A stretch of 64,000 nt of DNA from NCBI GenBank assembly GCA_964035545.1, contig OZ037769.1, positions 3,141,729 through 3,205,728 of the forward strand. The letters run 5' to 3'. How positions within the stretch are numbered: the stretch's first letter is position 1; each line of letters begins with the position of its first letter. The notes below the pieces were generated by a model that did no database searches, was not told the DNA's origin, and saw only the letters and a program-made list of their open reading frames with translations. This stretch comes from Bugula neritina. Taxonomy: Eukaryota; Animalia; Bryozoa. Shown in pieces: positions 1,879-62,759 of this stretch. Both the position numbers and the translations under genes were made by a program.

Positions 1879-4800
1879 GTAACATAATATGATATAATAT
1901 AATATGATATTTATTGGCAGCTTTAACGAGACTTAATTGATTGACTAATGGGATGTGGCTGGGGTCAATGCCTTCACCCTGACAGACAGAATTTTGATGA
2001 AATACATGCGAAACCTTTCCTATCACTAAATGCAAACACCAGCCCTTTTAGTATCCATTATTTTCAGAAATGATGGATATATACCTTAAAATCAAAGTTT
2101 AATGTGAAACTGCAAGCCTGGAGCTGCTCCATAATAGATAGTCTTATTATGTGACCCTATTTATCTTTCCTTGAAGTTCACTTCACATTGTAGTACTATA
2201 CCATTTCTCAGCATTTTCATATACTGGTGCTGTTTGAGCTTTTTATATTTACTATAAAAACCGCTGGTTTCCCATAACTGCTGGAATTTATTACTAGCTA
2301 ATGCTTTGGTGTTTTGATTGATTGACTCACTTCTGAAAATTCTAGAAGCTTACAATAATTTCTTTGAAGTTGATACTATAACATTACGTTGGTAAAGAAA
2401 TAATACTTGCATTTTCAGCAAAATTCTTTGTGTATTCTGCATCTTCAGACAAAAACTGCTAGATCTGGAATTTCTTTCACACTGATGTTGACACTTTGAT
2501 TAGAAATTTATGAGCAGGATGTTGAATTAAGTGGCCATTAGGTATAGTCTCACCTTTTGACTGGAGCTGTCAGTGCTGGATGCATGTTTGGTCATTTGTC
2601 AACTCAAGTGCCTTAGAAAGTTCAACTCTGTTGACCAGTTTCCTGTGTTGAGCAGCTTCTATACGTTAGCTGGCCATTTTTTATTACTTGAAAATATGTT
2701 TCACTTTCAACCCCCCCCCCCCCCCAATACTCTTAGATGAGGATGGTAAAACACAATAGAGTGTTACAAGGCATTAATACCTTGATGGTAGAGAGAGTTC
2801 CAATTACGTGAGGCTAAGGATTGGGGGATAAAATAATGTTCCCCCCCCCCCTGTTAACTGTAAATGGTACGAATTATCTGAAGTAATGCATGTTTTGGGT
2901 AATAATTTCTTAATCCCATCCCATTTGCTTCTCGCAGCTGCGTACCAACTGTTCAATCTTAATGAGAATGGTGAAAGAAGGGAAGACGGCAAAGGAGCTA
3001 GACGATGCTGTGTGTACAATGATGTCTTCTGTAAGTATGCAACACAATGATCTCTAAACAGACAGCTACTAGGTACATTTTTCACATCAAGTTTGAGCAT
3101 GTATTTTTTAAAATGATGAAGAAGTTTTTCAGAACTGGTAAACACAGCAAGCTGGGTGATGAGATGAAAGCTGCATACCAGAGTAGGCTTGTTGACAGTG
3201 TTTATATTTGGATCACTATTAAAATGAGACTAAAGATATTTGAGTTGGTTTTATTGAGTGCAGGTGGACACTAGATGGGACGTAATCCATGCTAATAAAG
3301 CTCAGAGCTCAAAACATTGCCAACTTTTAAAGCTTTGGCTAAGTTTTATATTAGATAAAATTGGAAACATTGCCATATTAGCTGCCAGCTGAGGTTAACT
3401 GCAACTCAAGAGATAGTAAACATAAGTTTGTTATAATTATTTGGCAGGATACAATTATTTAATTGAATGTCCTAAAATATATATATATTATGGGATATAA
3501 TATATTATTGATTATTTGTTAGAAAATATATCATTTATTTGTTTATAGTATGCTAGTTTCAGTTCATTGATTTGTTTACATATTATTTTTAGGACAATTT
3601 AATTTAAAAAACACACATGTTTGGTGTAAAGCTCTGAAAGCTGTGATGAGTACCTTCAAGCAACTAAAAAAAAACAAAGTCTTTTAAATTTATATATATA
3701 GAATAATATTTTATTTCCCATAACTATAAGGTCACTGGTCCTTAACCATTATGTCTAGGAATGCCATGCAGTTTAACTTTTATAATTAATGGATGGTGAA
3801 GTGTCCGTAAACAGTCACATACTTTGTTGTGGGTGTAGTCCTATCTATCATGTCTGTGATACCAACAGGCTGATGAAAATTGGGTCACTGAGAGATTATA
3901 ATAATTTATTTTATTTCTCCAGTCAACATTCTTGCTATGTGCTGCTATCACGTTGTGAACATAAAGTGAAACCATTAAACAAGAAACAACTTTGTTTTTA
4001 AGTTCTGACTCTGTGGGAAATCTACTGAAGTAAACTTAGCATTATATTGCATTACTTTGTATATATAAGCTTATTTCATTGGAGTTATGTATTCTTTAAC
4101 CTGCACTGCACCCCTGCTGACCATAAAACAAGATATTAGATATTGCTAGTGATGCAAATGATAAAGTGTGTAGGCTGTATGGAGCCAGGGGGTGGAATAA
4201 ATTAAACCAATTGTTGTAAAAGGAGTAATTGTTCTATAGTGGCACTTGACACAGCAGCTCATATCCTGAAGGGAAGTGCAATCCAAGATCCTAATTGTTC
4301 TAATAAACCTGGTGATATGAATGTAAAACTATGGCAAACAGAGCCAGTGGTTTGCAAGTAGTTGGGGCTACTTTCCAGCATTTTCTGTCACTTACTGTTT
4401 CCCAGATTTCTGTCTTTTATGATACATTATTCTGTGGAGAAACAGAGCGGTCTGTTTCCACACTCTATTCAATTCTATGAATTGTTTGGTCGGAATTTTG
4501 TTTTCAAAAAATCAAAGCACCATTTGACTTTTGAAATCTTTCAAATATATTTTCAGTTTTACAAGGTGCTTGCTTGCACACTGCATGTGAAAATGACTTA
4601 TGAGGGGGGGGGAGGGCTGTGAATTTTTATAGTGGATGAACGACATTGCAAGAATGATTATGCTGGAGTGAGTTATATATTATGTTAATTTTTAGACGTC
4701 TGAAGCATAACTGCTATACAACGCATATATTTAGCACAGCAACCAGGCATTACATAAAAAAAATGCCAAGTAAATTATAGCTGTGCAGTTTTCCTCTATA

Positions 4801-49595: not shown

Positions 49596-50555
49596 TCACA
49601 AAACATATGGGATAATCATGTATCGCTTTGGGTAGTCTTCAAACTTTTGTTTGTACCATTTATGAGTTATGTGTATCATGAGCAGTTGATTTGTGCAAGT
49701 AAACAGCACAGGTCCCATCCAGAAGGCATAGCTCCTCATCGCCACCAGGCCCATGGCAATGTAGATCAATATTTCACAAACGAAATGTGGTGCGGAGAAA
49801 TATTCGAACAACCCACCGTATGGTATAGTGTGTTTAGTATGTAACACTGTCTTTCCTGTAGCGTCTTTTCTCAGCTGAGCTAAAATGACATGACTCTGGT
49901 GATGATGGTATGAGGCCCACAGAAAGATGGCTACTCCCAAAATTTTATGCCAATTCCCAAGTAAATTCTCTCCTAGAGATAAAAGTGAGACTCGGGTGTG
50001 CTGAGATTGGCAATTCAAAGTGGGGCCATCGGAGATGGCGCACAATTGTACTGTAGAATACAACATAAAACCCAGAAAGTAATGAAGCACGTTCATAGTT
50101 CCCTTTGAATATACGCTGATGGTTTGACACTCATAAATCCTTCTGGCATGTTGTATCAACATCATCATACAAATCATCATGACGGAATATTTATCTATGG
50201 TCGGTTTCTTTGCAGCATTTAAAAAGATATTATTTACAGTTCCCTTGCCTGGCACATCCACACCAAAAACAAAACATCCAACTGTTAGCAAAACCATAAA
50301 AACTGAAACACATATTCCAAAAATGTAGTAGTGCCTGAACCAAGATTTCGGTACTTCTATGAGTTTGACTAAATGGTTTTCAACTTTACCATTTCTGGTT
50401 TTCCCATACTGAAATAGTTCAAGTATCCACCTTGGAGGCGATATCCACTCAAACGTGGTTGGTATACCATAGAGCAACAGAAGGAGGTCACATGTCCAGT
50501 AGAGGTAGAGGATCCATTGAATATTAATAAGCTGAAGGCACACTTCAAAAACCAT
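49596..50555 (-). CDS. SRD5A3: Polyprenol (polyprenal) reductase, steroid 5-alpha-reductase 3 family, 319 aa, single coding exon
   Basis: Motifs FQYGKT, VPKSWFRHYY, HARRIYEC, MNVLHYFLGFMLY, SHVILAQLRK, HTIPYGGLFEYFSAPHFVCEILIY, THKWYKQKFEDYPKR..IIPYVL; multi-pass hydrophobic profile. The first ATG is at 50555; the ORF track starts at a TTG. Confidence 0.95.
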   Translation of the reverse strand: MVFEVCLQLINIQWILYLYWTCDLLLLLYGIPTTFEWISPPRWILELFQYGKTRNGKVENHLVKLIEVPKSWFRHYYIFGICVSVFMVLLTVGCFVFGVDVPGKGTVNNIFLNAAKKPTIDKYSVMMICMMMLIQHARRIYECQTISVYSKGTMNVLHYFLGFMLYSTVQLCAISDGPTLNCQSQHTRVSLLSLGENLLGNWHKILGVAIFLWASYHHHQSHVILAQLRKDATGKTVLHTKHTIPYGGLFEYFSAPHFVCEILIYIAMGLVAMRSYAFWMGPVLFTCTNQLLMIHITHKWYKQKFEDYPKRYMIIPYVL

Positions 50556-50920
50556 TATAATCAATATTTACTCCAGGTATTGTTACACACTTACTTCTAG
50601 CTTTATGATCACTACATATGTAATTGTATAGTGATATAGTCAAAATTAGCAAAGATTAGTCTACGATCACCATATCATTATAATTATTAATAAAACCAAT
50701 ATATAAACTTCGGTGTTTTTGTGGTGCTGCTGTAGATCAAATGTGATGCCCGTTACTTAACTTTGTAGCTGTTAGTGTTACTGTTAGTGTTACAGTTAGT
50801 TTTATAAATGCCGAGTTGTAAGTTTCGTACAGTAATAGTATGCTCCGTATTGTTGCTTAGCTGTAATAGTAGGAATTTATGTCACGCTTCAATGACTACC
50901 CAACCAATAAAACCGGTGTA

Positions 50921-58916: not shown

Positions 58917-60022
58917 CTAGTTGCAGTCTGCCCAACATTCTCCGTATGTTAAACTAAACAGAGTGCCTGGTTCTACTGAGGCTCGTGGGGGTTCATCACC
59001 TGTACAGTCATGAGTTGGTGGTTTAACCAGGTTATATTCCACAGTATTACCAATGACATGGCGTGCATTGAGTAGGTAGCGATGATAGGGTGAGTCTTGA
59101 TCCATGAACATTAGCTGAACATGAAGAGGGGGGGCTTGATCTGCCTCCCCGCAGAAAGGTAATCTTCTGATCATAAAATATGCAGCCTCTGATTCATCCA
59201 CCACCTACAGAATAGCAAATATAACAGAATAGCAAATATCTTTGTAATGTAAATTGAATATCTTTACCTAGACCACTGTTATAGTCTGGCACAGATAGCC
59301 GTAAATTTCACATTACTATTCATAATTTTACTAAATAAGTTCACTAAGCTTACTAAGAATTGCATTGGACACTCAAATCTAAGCGAAGACCTGTTAATCA
59401 TCTACCCTCAGAAGGACTTTATTATGAAAGGATTTTATTAATTTTTTCAGTTTAAATTCTAAAATGAGAATATAAAATACCATGAATCTTACCTTAATGG
59501 ATAGTTTACCATTCTCTATCACCAGCCTCTCCACATCTCCTTGGGGTACTCTGTGCTCACACCTGTTTTTACCTGCAGCTTGTTTTCCAGCAAATCGTCT
59601 CCCCCTCTCAGTGATGAATGTTACGTAGGAACGTGCTTTAGCACTGTCAGCAGCCTTGGCCACCCAAAGTCTGTCTAAATATGTAATGTGTACTATTGTA
59701 GAATATATATATAATATGTACTATTGTAGAATATATATATATGATTTGTACTACTAATGCTCTCACTTTACGCTCAGCAATGACATTCAGTGATTGAACA
59801 CTCTAACCATGGTCACAAACTCAAGCTGCTAGCATTTTGCAAGACTAGTGACTCCTAGTTGACCCCTAGAGTCACTTGAGCACTCTGGCTTGAGTTTACA
59901 TAGCATTTAAATATGCTTTAGTAGAATCATAAGTTTCTACCATTGCTAAGGTGTTGACCATGGTTTACTGTTCTGTGCTGATGAGGGGACAAATTCCGAA
60001 ACAGCTGCTGTACACAGATTGA

Positions 60023-60099
<77 letters not shown>

Positions 60100-61495
60100 T
60101 ATTGTAGAATAGATATATTGAGAAAAGTAGAGTCTTCCAAGAAATATTTTTGTAATGTTAACTATGTTAATATTTTCATGCACTGTTTCTAGTAAGCGTG
60201 TACATGGATAGGGGGTTAAAACATGAACTACATCACAGTAATTAGTTCATAAAAGCAATTTTGTTAATTATTCACAAAATAGAAAGAATTCACACTGTTA
60301 GCATGCTTTTGTTATTTTAATCAAAATGGGTTAAATATGCAGGAAATTTAACAATAAATATAAGCTTAAAGCTATGAATATACTTGCTATTCAATTTTGT
60401 GCTTTCTCTGTAAATTTAAATACTCGTTTGAAATACAGGTATGCTATAGAGTATAATGGTTTTTTTTCACAGTAATATTTTATTTGGAAAGTCATTTATA
60501 TACTATATTGTTTAATTTCTATTATGCTAATAAACTAAAATTAATTTTATTAACAGTGCTAATGCTTTAATGTTTTCTAGTATTTAAACAAGTGCTTTGA
60601 AAAGTACTACAAACTCACTATTAGGGTGATTTCCACGCTTTCCATTGACAACTTTCCCATTTTTGGCACCCAAATATGCATTCACAGTCCCATAACTAAA
60701 CATCCTCACTGTGCAATCCACTTCCGGCTGCAACAGTTAAAAACATGTTTTATATAGATACACTCATACACACATAGATGGAAAATAATCTGGTAAAATA
60801 TAGTAGCATTGGTAGTTACTTTACTCTAGCAGATAAATGTTTTTCTGTTGTCGATTGGATATTTTACCTGCAAAGTCTAAAGTGTTTGGTGTTTAAGATA
60901 TGTGTGGGTATTTAAGTAAAAACCAACCTTTTGAATGTTTTGTTGTTGGAATTCCTTCATGATGTCCGAAGGTCTCTCTCCTGGGATCTCATCTCTCAAG
61001 CCAGTCAGTGCTGCACTTGTTACAGTCATTGTCAGCATCTGTACAATATGTATAGTTTTATTGTAGAATGAAATAACATAATTATATATATGCAGCATTA
61101 TAATATAATCTGTAAAATAAGGAAATACATGATCTTCTCACATTAATTTATTTATTAAATATTTTGAACAACTTTTTAGATTTAACATTGATAACTTTCA
61201 TAATTTCTCAGAATAATATTGATTTGTTTTGTGCACAATAGTTATTTAAGTGCGCAGAATAATTATTAAAAAAGAAAAAAATAATTTGCCTCTATATAAA
61301 CTGTATATATAAAATTGTCTTCATTAAAATGTTAAGTGGTTTTAAAATTTATGTGTATGTAGTTTACCTGTATGCAAGTTATAATATAACACTTATATAC
61401 TATGTTTACATGTGGGTTATTCATGATATTATTTATTAGCTACTATATATAACACTTACCAAAGCCACTCCAACAATAAACACTAATGATGTCAT
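58917..61495 (-). CDS. Uncharacterised secreted protein, 241 aa, putative beta-trefoil (IL-1/FGF-like). Exons 61460-61495, 60928-61038, 60619-60727, 59493-59674, 58917-59204
   Basis: Five exons with canonical splice sites and phases 0,0,1,0 splice into a 726-nt stop-free ORF. N-terminal hydrophobic leader MTSLVFIVGVALMLTMTVTSA; six cysteines. The gene model is well supported; the fold assignment is inference. Confidence 0.8.
60026..60097. repeat. (AT)n microsatellite
   Basis: Pure run of about 35 units. Confidence 0.95.
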
Positions 61496-62759
61496 TTTGT
61501 CAAAAATTATTTCAAGAACTAGTCTCTGTTACAAGTTGATGTGAACTGATTTGTAGTTGAAGAAAGAATGATTTTGGTTTGACTGAGTTGAACATTTTAT
61601 ACCATCAAGTTTTGAATACAAGTCATTTTGGCCTTTCCTTTGCAGGTTTTCACGTTGAGAATTCCCAACTTATTCATTTATCTGAGTAATTAATAGTAAC
61701 CACTGCTATATCTTTCACCCATTATACTATATATATAATTTGACTATACAAATGTACTAGTTGGAAATTCCCGTTGTGAACAAGTTAACTTGTTACATTG
61801 TGCAATAGGATGCAAGCTCTCTGTGGGTTAGTTAGCAGAATGGCGTGTATAGTTTGTATATTGAGTTTTATCACAAATTTCAAGAGATAAGATATTAAGG
61901 AAGTTCTTGGTCTCACCTTTGTTGGTTTTTTACCTGTACATGTAACTGTATGCAGTATGAGTAATATACCATATATAACTGGGTATTCTCATAATGTACT
62001 TTTTCAAGCAGTATAATGCTAGTTTCTCCAAGTACCACCAGTTTCTCTTTGTGCACGTTTTTAACTTGGAATTTTCACTTTGAACATTTGAATCTGTAAC
62101 TCCATGACATAGAGCTTTTCTTGTTTGTCAATCATTTTATTTATTTCCGTTCAAACAATAAAAGCAACTTTATTCAATCCAATACAAATACTGACAAAAT
62201 CAAGCATTGCAAACTTTAAAGCAAGCTAACACAAATTTTCTGGTTTGACCAAATTAGCTGGCTGCACAAATTATAAGGCTCTCTATTTCATATTGTATGT
62301 TGATTCTTGTGAACAAATTTTTAGTCCAGTCAAACTCTATTTTTATCTTCTTAGAATTATCAGATCTTTTCAGGAAGAAGAGTTTTCCTTAGAATTCTAT
62401 ATGGTAAAGAATTGATATCAGTATCAGCTAAAGTTCTTGTCAATAAGTTACAGAAAGAGTCAATTATATTTTAACCTCTGCTTTTAACTTGCAATAAAAA
62501 TTTATTCTGTGCAATAATGTGAATAAAGAATATAAGTGCACTACATTAAGCCACCTACTTAATGAAGACAGTTCTATGATCTGTAATCACTGCACACAGA
62601 AAGCATACATTATACACTATTATTGCGATAGTTTGGCTAGCAATAGTTCAGCTTGAATATCATTAGTAGTGTGGTCACGTGATTCGGGTATCGCTACTGA
62701 CTAATAGGGGAATTCCCATGCCTGTATTGACCAGGTAATAATACAATTAGTTATCTTTT

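Follow-up and report, generated by a model that had tools for sequence, protein, structure and literature searches.

What kind of protein is encoded by a small five-exon gene on the minus strand of a Bugula neritina contig, and is it really the cytokine for which it has been taken? The gene, named gene A in the following, occupies positions 58917-61495 of a stretch of 64,000 nucleotides (contig OZ037769.1, positions 3,141,729 to 3,205,728 of the forward strand; hereafter the window), and a sequence-only reading of this stretch had described it as an unannotated secreted protein resembling an invertebrate IL-1/FGF-type beta-trefoil cytokine. Taking all the evidence described below together, we lean, with somewhat better than even confidence, towards a functional five-exon gene of a bryozoan family, whose secreted and disulfide-stabilised beta-trefoil products would serve as a lineage-specific binding module in recognition or defence.

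The gene model itself can be read in the window as it had been proposed, with five exons and an open reading frame (ORF) of 241 codons. The pieces translate as had been quoted, all four introns run from GT to AG with phases 0, 0, 1 and 0 in order, and of the six cysteines in the product exon 5 encodes four, while exons 3 and 4 contribute one each. The signal-peptide-like leader also stands on inspection, for its roughly 21 residues show an n-region without charges, about 15 residues of hydrophobic character and then the small residues T-S-A, after which cleavage is probable. Judged by eye in this way, the leader suggests that the product is secreted, and it would be this N-terminal signal peptide by which the protein enters the secretory pathway. 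The short segment between the leader and the core had been called pro-like, a description that may not hold: since no dibasic site is found at its end, and since its last ~13 residues recur in a Watersipora homolog and in the paralogs on contig C3 described below (single tblastn alignments at E 0.1-0.2, individually not significant), the segment may belong to the mature protein.

Relatives of gene A were found both in its own genome and in public collections. Searched against the genome, exon 5 gives twelve matches, namely itself and 11 others with E values from 4e-61 to 5e-3. On C5, the contig of the window, the matches form a trio made up of gene A, gene B (94% identical, about 10 kb off and on the opposite strand) and gene C (39% identical, 3.5 kb beyond), and on contig C3 at least nine matches are arrayed at 25.23-25.30 Mb. 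Two of the exon-5 cysteines are invariant in all seven aligned copies (alignment A1), the phase-0 acceptor of exon 5 is conserved across the copies, and a cysteine near the N-terminus co-occurs with one near the C-terminus in A, B and Watersipora; such a cysteine pattern points to disulfide bonds in the product. When the exon-5 profile built from alignment A1 was compared with 1.84 billion representative proteins, only 10 matches were returned, and those with a name come from Watersipora subatra and Bugula neritina. The sole full-length public relative is P0007, a 271-residue uncharacterized protein of the cheilostome bryozoan Watersipora subatra, with its gene on OY755159.1. In P0007, as in gene A, the core is preceded by a signal peptide and a pre-core segment, and this core is 35-43% identical to gene A in exons 4-5, including the E-R-L-V, V-Q-L-M and P-G-T-L-F motifs; P0007 differs in that leader and pre-core segment are encoded in one exon where gene A uses two, the pre-core segment is longer, the middle exon is shorter, and there are four cysteines against six.

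The Bugula match, P0002 (EB796_012109), is a hypothetical protein of 102 residues that is 91% identical to gene A, and in its public model exon 2 continues directly at an AG that lies 30 codons into exon 5 (after ...GTTCAG), with exons 1, 3 and 4 omitted. Read against the exon structure, EB796_012109 is a truncated mis-splice of the gene A type that lacks the N-terminal two thirds of the core. The word unannotated in the sequence-only reading is thus right for the full gene, which is missing from the annotation, and too strong in that this truncated public model of the same gene type exists. Most of the remaining profile matches are exon-5-sized ORFs of 82-119 residues on short contigs of unlabelled metagenome assemblies, of which the inspected ones have 33-37% G+C, and one contig (L022) has recognisable exons 3, 4 and 5; the weakest match, P0010, is a tandem-repeat protein of 355 residues that looks unrelated. 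Contigs L015-L017, L020 and L022 from the ENA metagenomes, which are AT-rich and eukaryote-like, carry family members, and among them L020 appears nearest to the A/B type but is frame-shifted within its exon-4 equivalent. A word search with P0007 alone returned nothing except P0007 itself, sequence searches of the PDB with P0007 and with the family profile gave chance matches only, and neither exons 2-5 of gene A nor full-length P0007 matched any Pfam family at E<=10. In the literature, no paper was found that links Bugula with beta-trefoil proteins. So far, then, the family is known from cheilostome bryozoans and from unlabelled AT-rich metagenome contigs, and its apparent restriction to bryozoans describes the state of the evidence and is no proof, the protein collections searched being ones in which multi-exon eukaryotic genes are poorly represented. 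With significant homology in the last exon and with motifs and intron positions in common, gene A is placed in a provisional bryozoan family of secreted trefoil-like proteins.

What fold does such a sequence adopt? The question was approached through the Watersipora homolog, with residues 79-271 of P0007 taken as the core. The ESM Atlas model of P0007 is of low confidence (predicted template modelling score, pTM, 0.54), and its structural neighbours over the core are almost all trefoil families, such as RicinB_lectin_2, MIR, AbfB and CBM13, at template modelling scores of 0.57-0.62. Those language-model neighbours of P0007 that have a Pfam family belong without exception to the trefoil clan (CDtoxinA, RicinB_lectin_2, Inhibitor_I66, AbfB, FRG1 and Fascin), and no FGF or IL1 family is among them. 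A first AlphaFold2 (AF2) model, with alignment depth in the last third only, reached a predicted local distance difference test (pLDDT) of 45.8 and gave VIA Z scores of at most 4.4 and uninformative Foldseek matches. The second AF2 model was built on an alignment (A8) in which the rows for exon 4 and exon 5 are correctly placed on P0007:79-271, and it has a mean pLDDT of 61 and a pTM of 0.60, with residues 63-190 at pLDDT 60-84 and residues 1-62 below 50.

This second model was compared with 48,161 PDB representative chains by VIA-align, where 139 chains reached Z>=5 and the best 50 of these 139 are all beta-trefoils at Z 6.9-8.6, whose alignments span model residues ~4-190 and include 104-144 residues at a root mean square deviation of 3.0-5.1 A. 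Among these best 50 are fascin (8.6), botulinum HA (8.5), Symfoil (8.3), CBM13 (8.1) and a Coprinopsis inhibitor (8.0), together with IL-33 (7.8), SeviL (7.7), FGF18 (7.6), FGF4 (7.5), IL-1Ra (7.1) and IL-36gamma (6.9). In the Foldseek search about 44 of the top 50 rows are trefoils and the first of them is IL-18 (E 0.056, probability 0.97), with no row at E<=0.001. After realignment of the Foldseek list by VIA, 378 chains have Z>=5, and the best 50 of them are again all beta-trefoils (Z 7.8-8.7), where IL-38 and IL-18 share the range of Z 8.0-8.7 with fascin, HA33 and designed Symfoils. On combining both AF2 models twelve strands are counted, with strand 3 seen in the first, low-confidence model only. 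Profiles of exons 3, 4 and 5 compared with each other by hhalign showed no internal three-fold repeat signal. As a separate observation, MAFFT repeatedly put exon-3 fragments (strands 1-2) on exon-5 strands 9-10, and the end of exon 4 on strands 10-11; such misplacement may reflect the pseudo-threefold symmetry of a trefoil, though hhalign found no significant repeat. On these models, which reach moderate confidence for the homolog, we regard a beta-trefoil fold for the family as highly probable. As to the nearest trefoil family, the modelled structures do not resolve it, for lectins and fascin score no differently from FGFs and IL-1s, all at Z 7-8.7. The claim of a beta-trefoil cytokine therefore divides in two: its fold agrees with the homolog model and with the structure matches, while its membership of FGF or IL-1 does not follow from them.

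We turn to the introns of the family. In Watersipora (locus L014) the core is encoded in three exons, with a phase-0 intron just ahead of P-x-x-D-C, where the core starts, a phase-1 intron two residues ahead of a conserved F/L-W, and a phase-0 intron after an L-V-A-K motif, and these three core introns (phases 0, 1 and 0) have the same positions and phases in gene A. Splice contexts compatible with the core intron positions of gene A are present in gene B, in the C3 copies, where the exon-3 equivalent lies between an AG acceptor and a GT donor, and in contig L022. Mapped on the Watersipora models, the phase-1 intron falls between strands 3 and 4 (strand 3 being of low confidence) and the phase-0 intron at the end of strand 7, before strand 8, which are trefoil strand boundaries. 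The short pre-core segment would accordingly be followed by a single 12-stranded domain of ~190 residues, with strands 1-3 encoded in exon 3, strands 4-7 in exon 4 and strands 8-12 in exon 5.

For comparison, the canonical FGF of this genome was located with Pfam PF00167 as a control (C7:15494185-15495650). Its middle exon begins in phase 1 (acceptor inferred) and ends in phase 0 right after G-D-L-Y-G-S, and its last exon opens with D-C-E-F-H-E of the FGF signature. With the strand positions of FGF2 taken from established knowledge, the phase-0 intron is at the same structural place in gene A and in this FGF. The proposed succession of a phase-1 and a phase-0 intron, as in FGF genes, is thus borne out, the two introns lying between strands 3/4 and 7/8 like those of the canonical FGF; this FGF-like placement is the most interesting feature of the locus. 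The lengths agree less well, for the middle exon of the family measures about 134 to 182 nucleotides against about 104 in FGFs. The insertion of ~26 residues that had been deduced for gene A is a measure against FGF, while against its own family the extra length of exon 4 in A and B amounts to a loop only about 8-15 residues longer than in other members, with a cysteine specific to A and B. In the control gene (L023, C7:15490000-15497000; exons ~4127-4257 and from 5481), we also observed that the middle exon is ~131 nucleotides long, against the usual 104, and that the FGF signature is accompanied by a long basic Ser/Lys-rich C-terminal tail.

Does the family then belong to the FGF or IL-1 cytokines? 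The rival explanation holds that it is a highly divergent, signal-peptide-bearing branch of the FGF/IL-1-type trefoil cytokines, sharing ancestry with them beyond the fold and acting as a receptor ligand in bryozoan immunity or development. Like gene A, FGFs have a single trefoil domain of similar size, are often secreted by a signal peptide, and have a core divided into three exons by a phase-1 intron ahead of strand 4 and a phase-0 one ahead of strand 8, while FGF18 and FGF4 align with the model at Z 7.5-7.6. For IL-1 genes, too, the sequence-only reading gives a phase-1 and then a phase-0 intron as established. Taken by itself, a phase 1/0 pair would occur with a prior of about one in seven, which lessens the weight of the agreement with FGFs. 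Two central trefoil introns with phasing conserved across IL-1 and invertebrate IL-1anc genes are described by Fontenla-Iglesias et al. 2026 (PMC13736523), where the phases themselves are given in a figure; the gene A family has two central introns of conserved phase as well. Besides, IL-18 is the first Foldseek match, IL-38, IL-18 and IL-33 align at Z 7.8-8.4 (with the two FGFs the range is 7.5-8.4), IL-1s typically diverge so far in sequence that BLAST and HMMER miss them, and kappaB-type promoter sites are found in both. The same source is a recent report of invertebrate IL-1s so divergent that sequence searches miss them, a few of them with signal peptides (PMC13736523).

Every test at the sequence level fails, however. 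Neither Pfam FGF nor Pfam IL1 matches exons 2-5 of gene A or P0007 at E<=10, and the family profile compared with all PDB sequences was null, so that the by-eye resemblances of short motifs to IL-1beta and FGF2, on which the sequence-only reading had relied, receive no statistical support. The Pfam FGF profile (PF00167) does detect the true FGF of this genome exon by exon (26.7 and 26.4 bits); Pfam IL1 (PF00340) has no match anywhere in this genome, so its null result has no positive control. The FGF signature, a PROSITE-type pattern G-x-[LIM]-x-[STAGP]-x(6,7)-[DENA]-C-x-[FLM]-x-E spanning strands 7-8, is carried by the canonical FGF as G-D-L-Y-G-x6-D-C-E-F-H-E and is absent across the exon 4/5 boundary of gene A, where G-K-L-S-I-K is followed by V-V-D-E-S-E-A-A-Y-F; that the core Cys-x-Phe-x-Glu of FGFs is missing had been noticed correctly. 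An (F/L)ES motif defines strand 9 of IL-1 and IL-1anc (PMC13736523), and it too is absent, for strand 9 of the model reads L-H-V-Q-L-M-F in gene A with Q-L-M invariant in all seven copies of alignment A1. The usual IL-1anc architecture given there is an N-terminal PDZ domain without signal peptide, with rare signal-peptide exceptions (PMC13736523), whereas Pfam finds no PDZ in exons 2-5 of gene A or in P0007 and gene A has a classical leader (by inspection; rare in IL-1s) together with conserved cysteines of disulfide type.

The family is, in short, a sequence orphan with a trefoil fold. In structure searches lectins, fascin, designed trefoils and inhibitors score as high as the cytokines or higher, and the family is restricted to a phylum and tandemly expanding, unlike the conserved FGFs. 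FGF/IL-1 membership is accordingly not upheld, and we consider the cytokine explanation as stated above unlikely. A cytokine role is kept as a candidate because of the intron pattern and the kappaB sites, and is similarly doubtful; the most specific version of it, a lineage-specific, conventionally secreted and PDZ-less bryozoan branch with ancestral phase-1/phase-0 introns, driven by Rel/NF-kappaB and tandemly expanded into an immune signalling family, seems improbable. If this version were true, it would mean a protostome cytokine system invisible to sequence searches.

We return to the reading that we favour, namely a secreted beta-trefoil of recognition or defence. Tandem expansion, fast divergence and phylum restriction are typical features of effectors, whereas conserved growth factors do not usually show them. 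Because the family shows all three, and because kappaB-type sites lie at the promoters of A and B, the product is better seen as a lineage-specific recognition or defence factor than as a conserved growth factor, and it would act extracellularly as a binding module for a carbohydrate or protein target. Such a role, argued by analogy, we regard as roughly an even call. Secreted trefoil lectins and inhibitors (ricin-B/CBM13-type, botulinum HA33/HA17, SeviL, fungal cospin/cocaprin and Kunitz-STI) provide the analogy: they give the best or joint-best structure matches (Z 7.7-8.5) and also the closest ESM Atlas clusters, they are secreted proteins, often with disulfide bonds, and their families in other organisms are expanded and specific to a lineage. 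They differ from gene A in that the latter has no Pfam match, no triple QxW, no Kunitz signature and no recognisable sugar-binding residues. For ricin-B lectin in particular (PF00652 / PF14200), Pfam finds nothing and the three QxW repeats are absent; one conserved x-L-W is present in strand 4, and the positions equivalent to QxW in repeats 2 and 3 read x-Y/H-F and T-L-F.

As to the promoter, the pattern GGGRNWYYCC occurs 6 times in the window against 1.04 expected, and none of 100 shuffles reached six. Four of these six matches, representing two distinct sites, are located within 1.25 kb upstream of gene A, and both sites recur at mirrored distances before gene B. These sites are a lead for inducible expression and no evidence of it; as read from the sequence they may make A and B inducible.

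Several points weigh against the favoured reading and should be told together. The fold was modelled on a homolog 35-43% identical to gene A and not on the gene A product, strands 1-3 (the first third of the model) have pLDDT <50 because exon-3 fragments could not be aligned, and a Z of ~8 is 'middling' on VIA-align's own scale. No ligand, lectin motif (e.g. QxW repeats) or inhibitor signature was found, so that a binding or defence role rests on analogy and family dynamics. Moreover, the kappaB motif is confined to the recent A/B pair, with none in the other family loci or the Watersipora locus examined, many of which perhaps do not include promoters.

Could gene A be no functional gene at all, that is, a young duplicate in decay or a chance assembly of ORFs? 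This possibility can be judged on gene B, a head-to-head inverted duplicate situated just past the end of the window (C5:3208538-3211156; L013:2810-5428), with the two ATGs ~5.3 kb apart. In the alignment of A with B, each of the five exons has the same length in both genes, is free of indels and shows 89-98% identity (96% overall), whereas identity in the introns is 72-93% and each of them has 8 to 296 gapped columns, and gene B keeps the frame, every splice site and the stop codon. Such a contrast between exons and introns, with intact frames in both copies, is what a real exon model predicts. The coding changes are 11 synonymous and 15 non-synonymous, giving a ratio of non-synonymous to synonymous rates (dN/dS) of 0.38, which alone is weak evidence because the duplication is young, with a synonymous distance (dS) of about 0.07; for the same reason the intact frame says little about selection, and the public annotation offers a truncated model only. 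Over the last 106 nucleotides ahead of the ATG, A and B show 98% identity, more than in exon 1 (89%). Decay or chance is countered further by the same exon structure encoding the full-length annotated protein of Watersipora, and by exon-5 homologs that keep the invariant cysteines and core residues across divergent copies. We conclude that gene A is a real-looking five-exon gene and more than a chance chain of ORFs as far as the sequence comparison goes, and that its being non-functional is quite improbable.

The last alternative, a peptide-hormone or neuropeptide precursor cut at G-K-R and G-R-R, is suggested by Gly-preceded dibasic sites that are encoded in exons 3 and 4 and follow a signal peptide, and we reject it as very improbable, for these sites are limited to A and B (the first is E-K-R in B, and the C3 copies, gene C, L022 and Watersipora have neither), the predicted strands and loops in which they lie belong to a globular all-beta domain, and the conserved blocks are hydrophobic strand motifs and not cleavage-flanked peptides.

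The positions of the exons and of the putative promoter elements are collected in Table 1.

Table 1. Exons of gene A and sequence elements upstream of it, in window coordinates.
Feature	Position	Strand	Description
Exon 1	61460-61495	minus	36 nucleotides, 12 codons: ATG and first 12 residues of the hydrophobic, signal-peptide-like leader; GTAAGT donor, with the same donor and length in paralog B
Exon 2	60928-61038	minus	37 codons: remainder of the leader and ~28-residue pre-core segment; phase-0 introns on either side; 98% identity to paralog B
Exon 3	60619-60727	minus	109 nucleotides, ending one base into a codon (phase-1 donor); start of the core, predicted strands 1-3 (low-confidence assignment), first Cys
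Exon 4	59493-59674	minus	182 nucleotides: predicted strands 4-7, variable Cys-bearing loop (longer in A/B), invariant E-R-L-V, phase-0 donor
Exon 5	58917-59204	minus	95 codons and TAG: predicted strands 8-12, four Cys, invariant V-Q-L-M-like and P-G-x-L-F motifs
TATAAAA	61595-61601	minus	~100 nucleotides upstream of the gene A ATG; read from the sequence, putative function
One-mismatch kappaB copy	61657-61666		
Perfect Rel/NF-kappaB-type decamer (GGGRNWYYCC)	61763-61772	minus (orientation of the gene)	~270 nucleotides upstream of the ATG; same site and distance before paralog B
Palindromic kappaB-type site	62707-62717	.	~1.2 kb upstream of gene A; mirrored before paralog B

Besides these features, intron 3 of gene A contains a long (TA)n microsatellite (60027-60098), which is flanked by short direct repeats of the unit 'tactattgtagaatatatata' at about 59690-59740 and 60095-60115. 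Elsewhere in the window, an uninterrupted ORF of 322 residues lies on the minus strand at 49596-50564, and its C-terminal part matches Pfam Steroid_dh (3-oxo-5-alpha-steroid 4-dehydrogenase; E 1.6e-24).

As for what the locus means, next to nothing is known of immunity and signalling in bryozoans, and the annotation of their genomes is systematically wrong for small secreted orphan proteins. Our analysis supplies a candidate set of three genes on C5 and an array on C3, with a defined exon structure, a probable trefoil fold, FGF-like introns and, at A and B, kappaB-type sites. The family also serves as a test case for the recent claim (PMC13736523) that IL-1-type trefoils are ancient, widespread and undetectable by sequence. 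Whether such a protein is a lectin-like effector or a cytokine is a question that this family makes directly testable.

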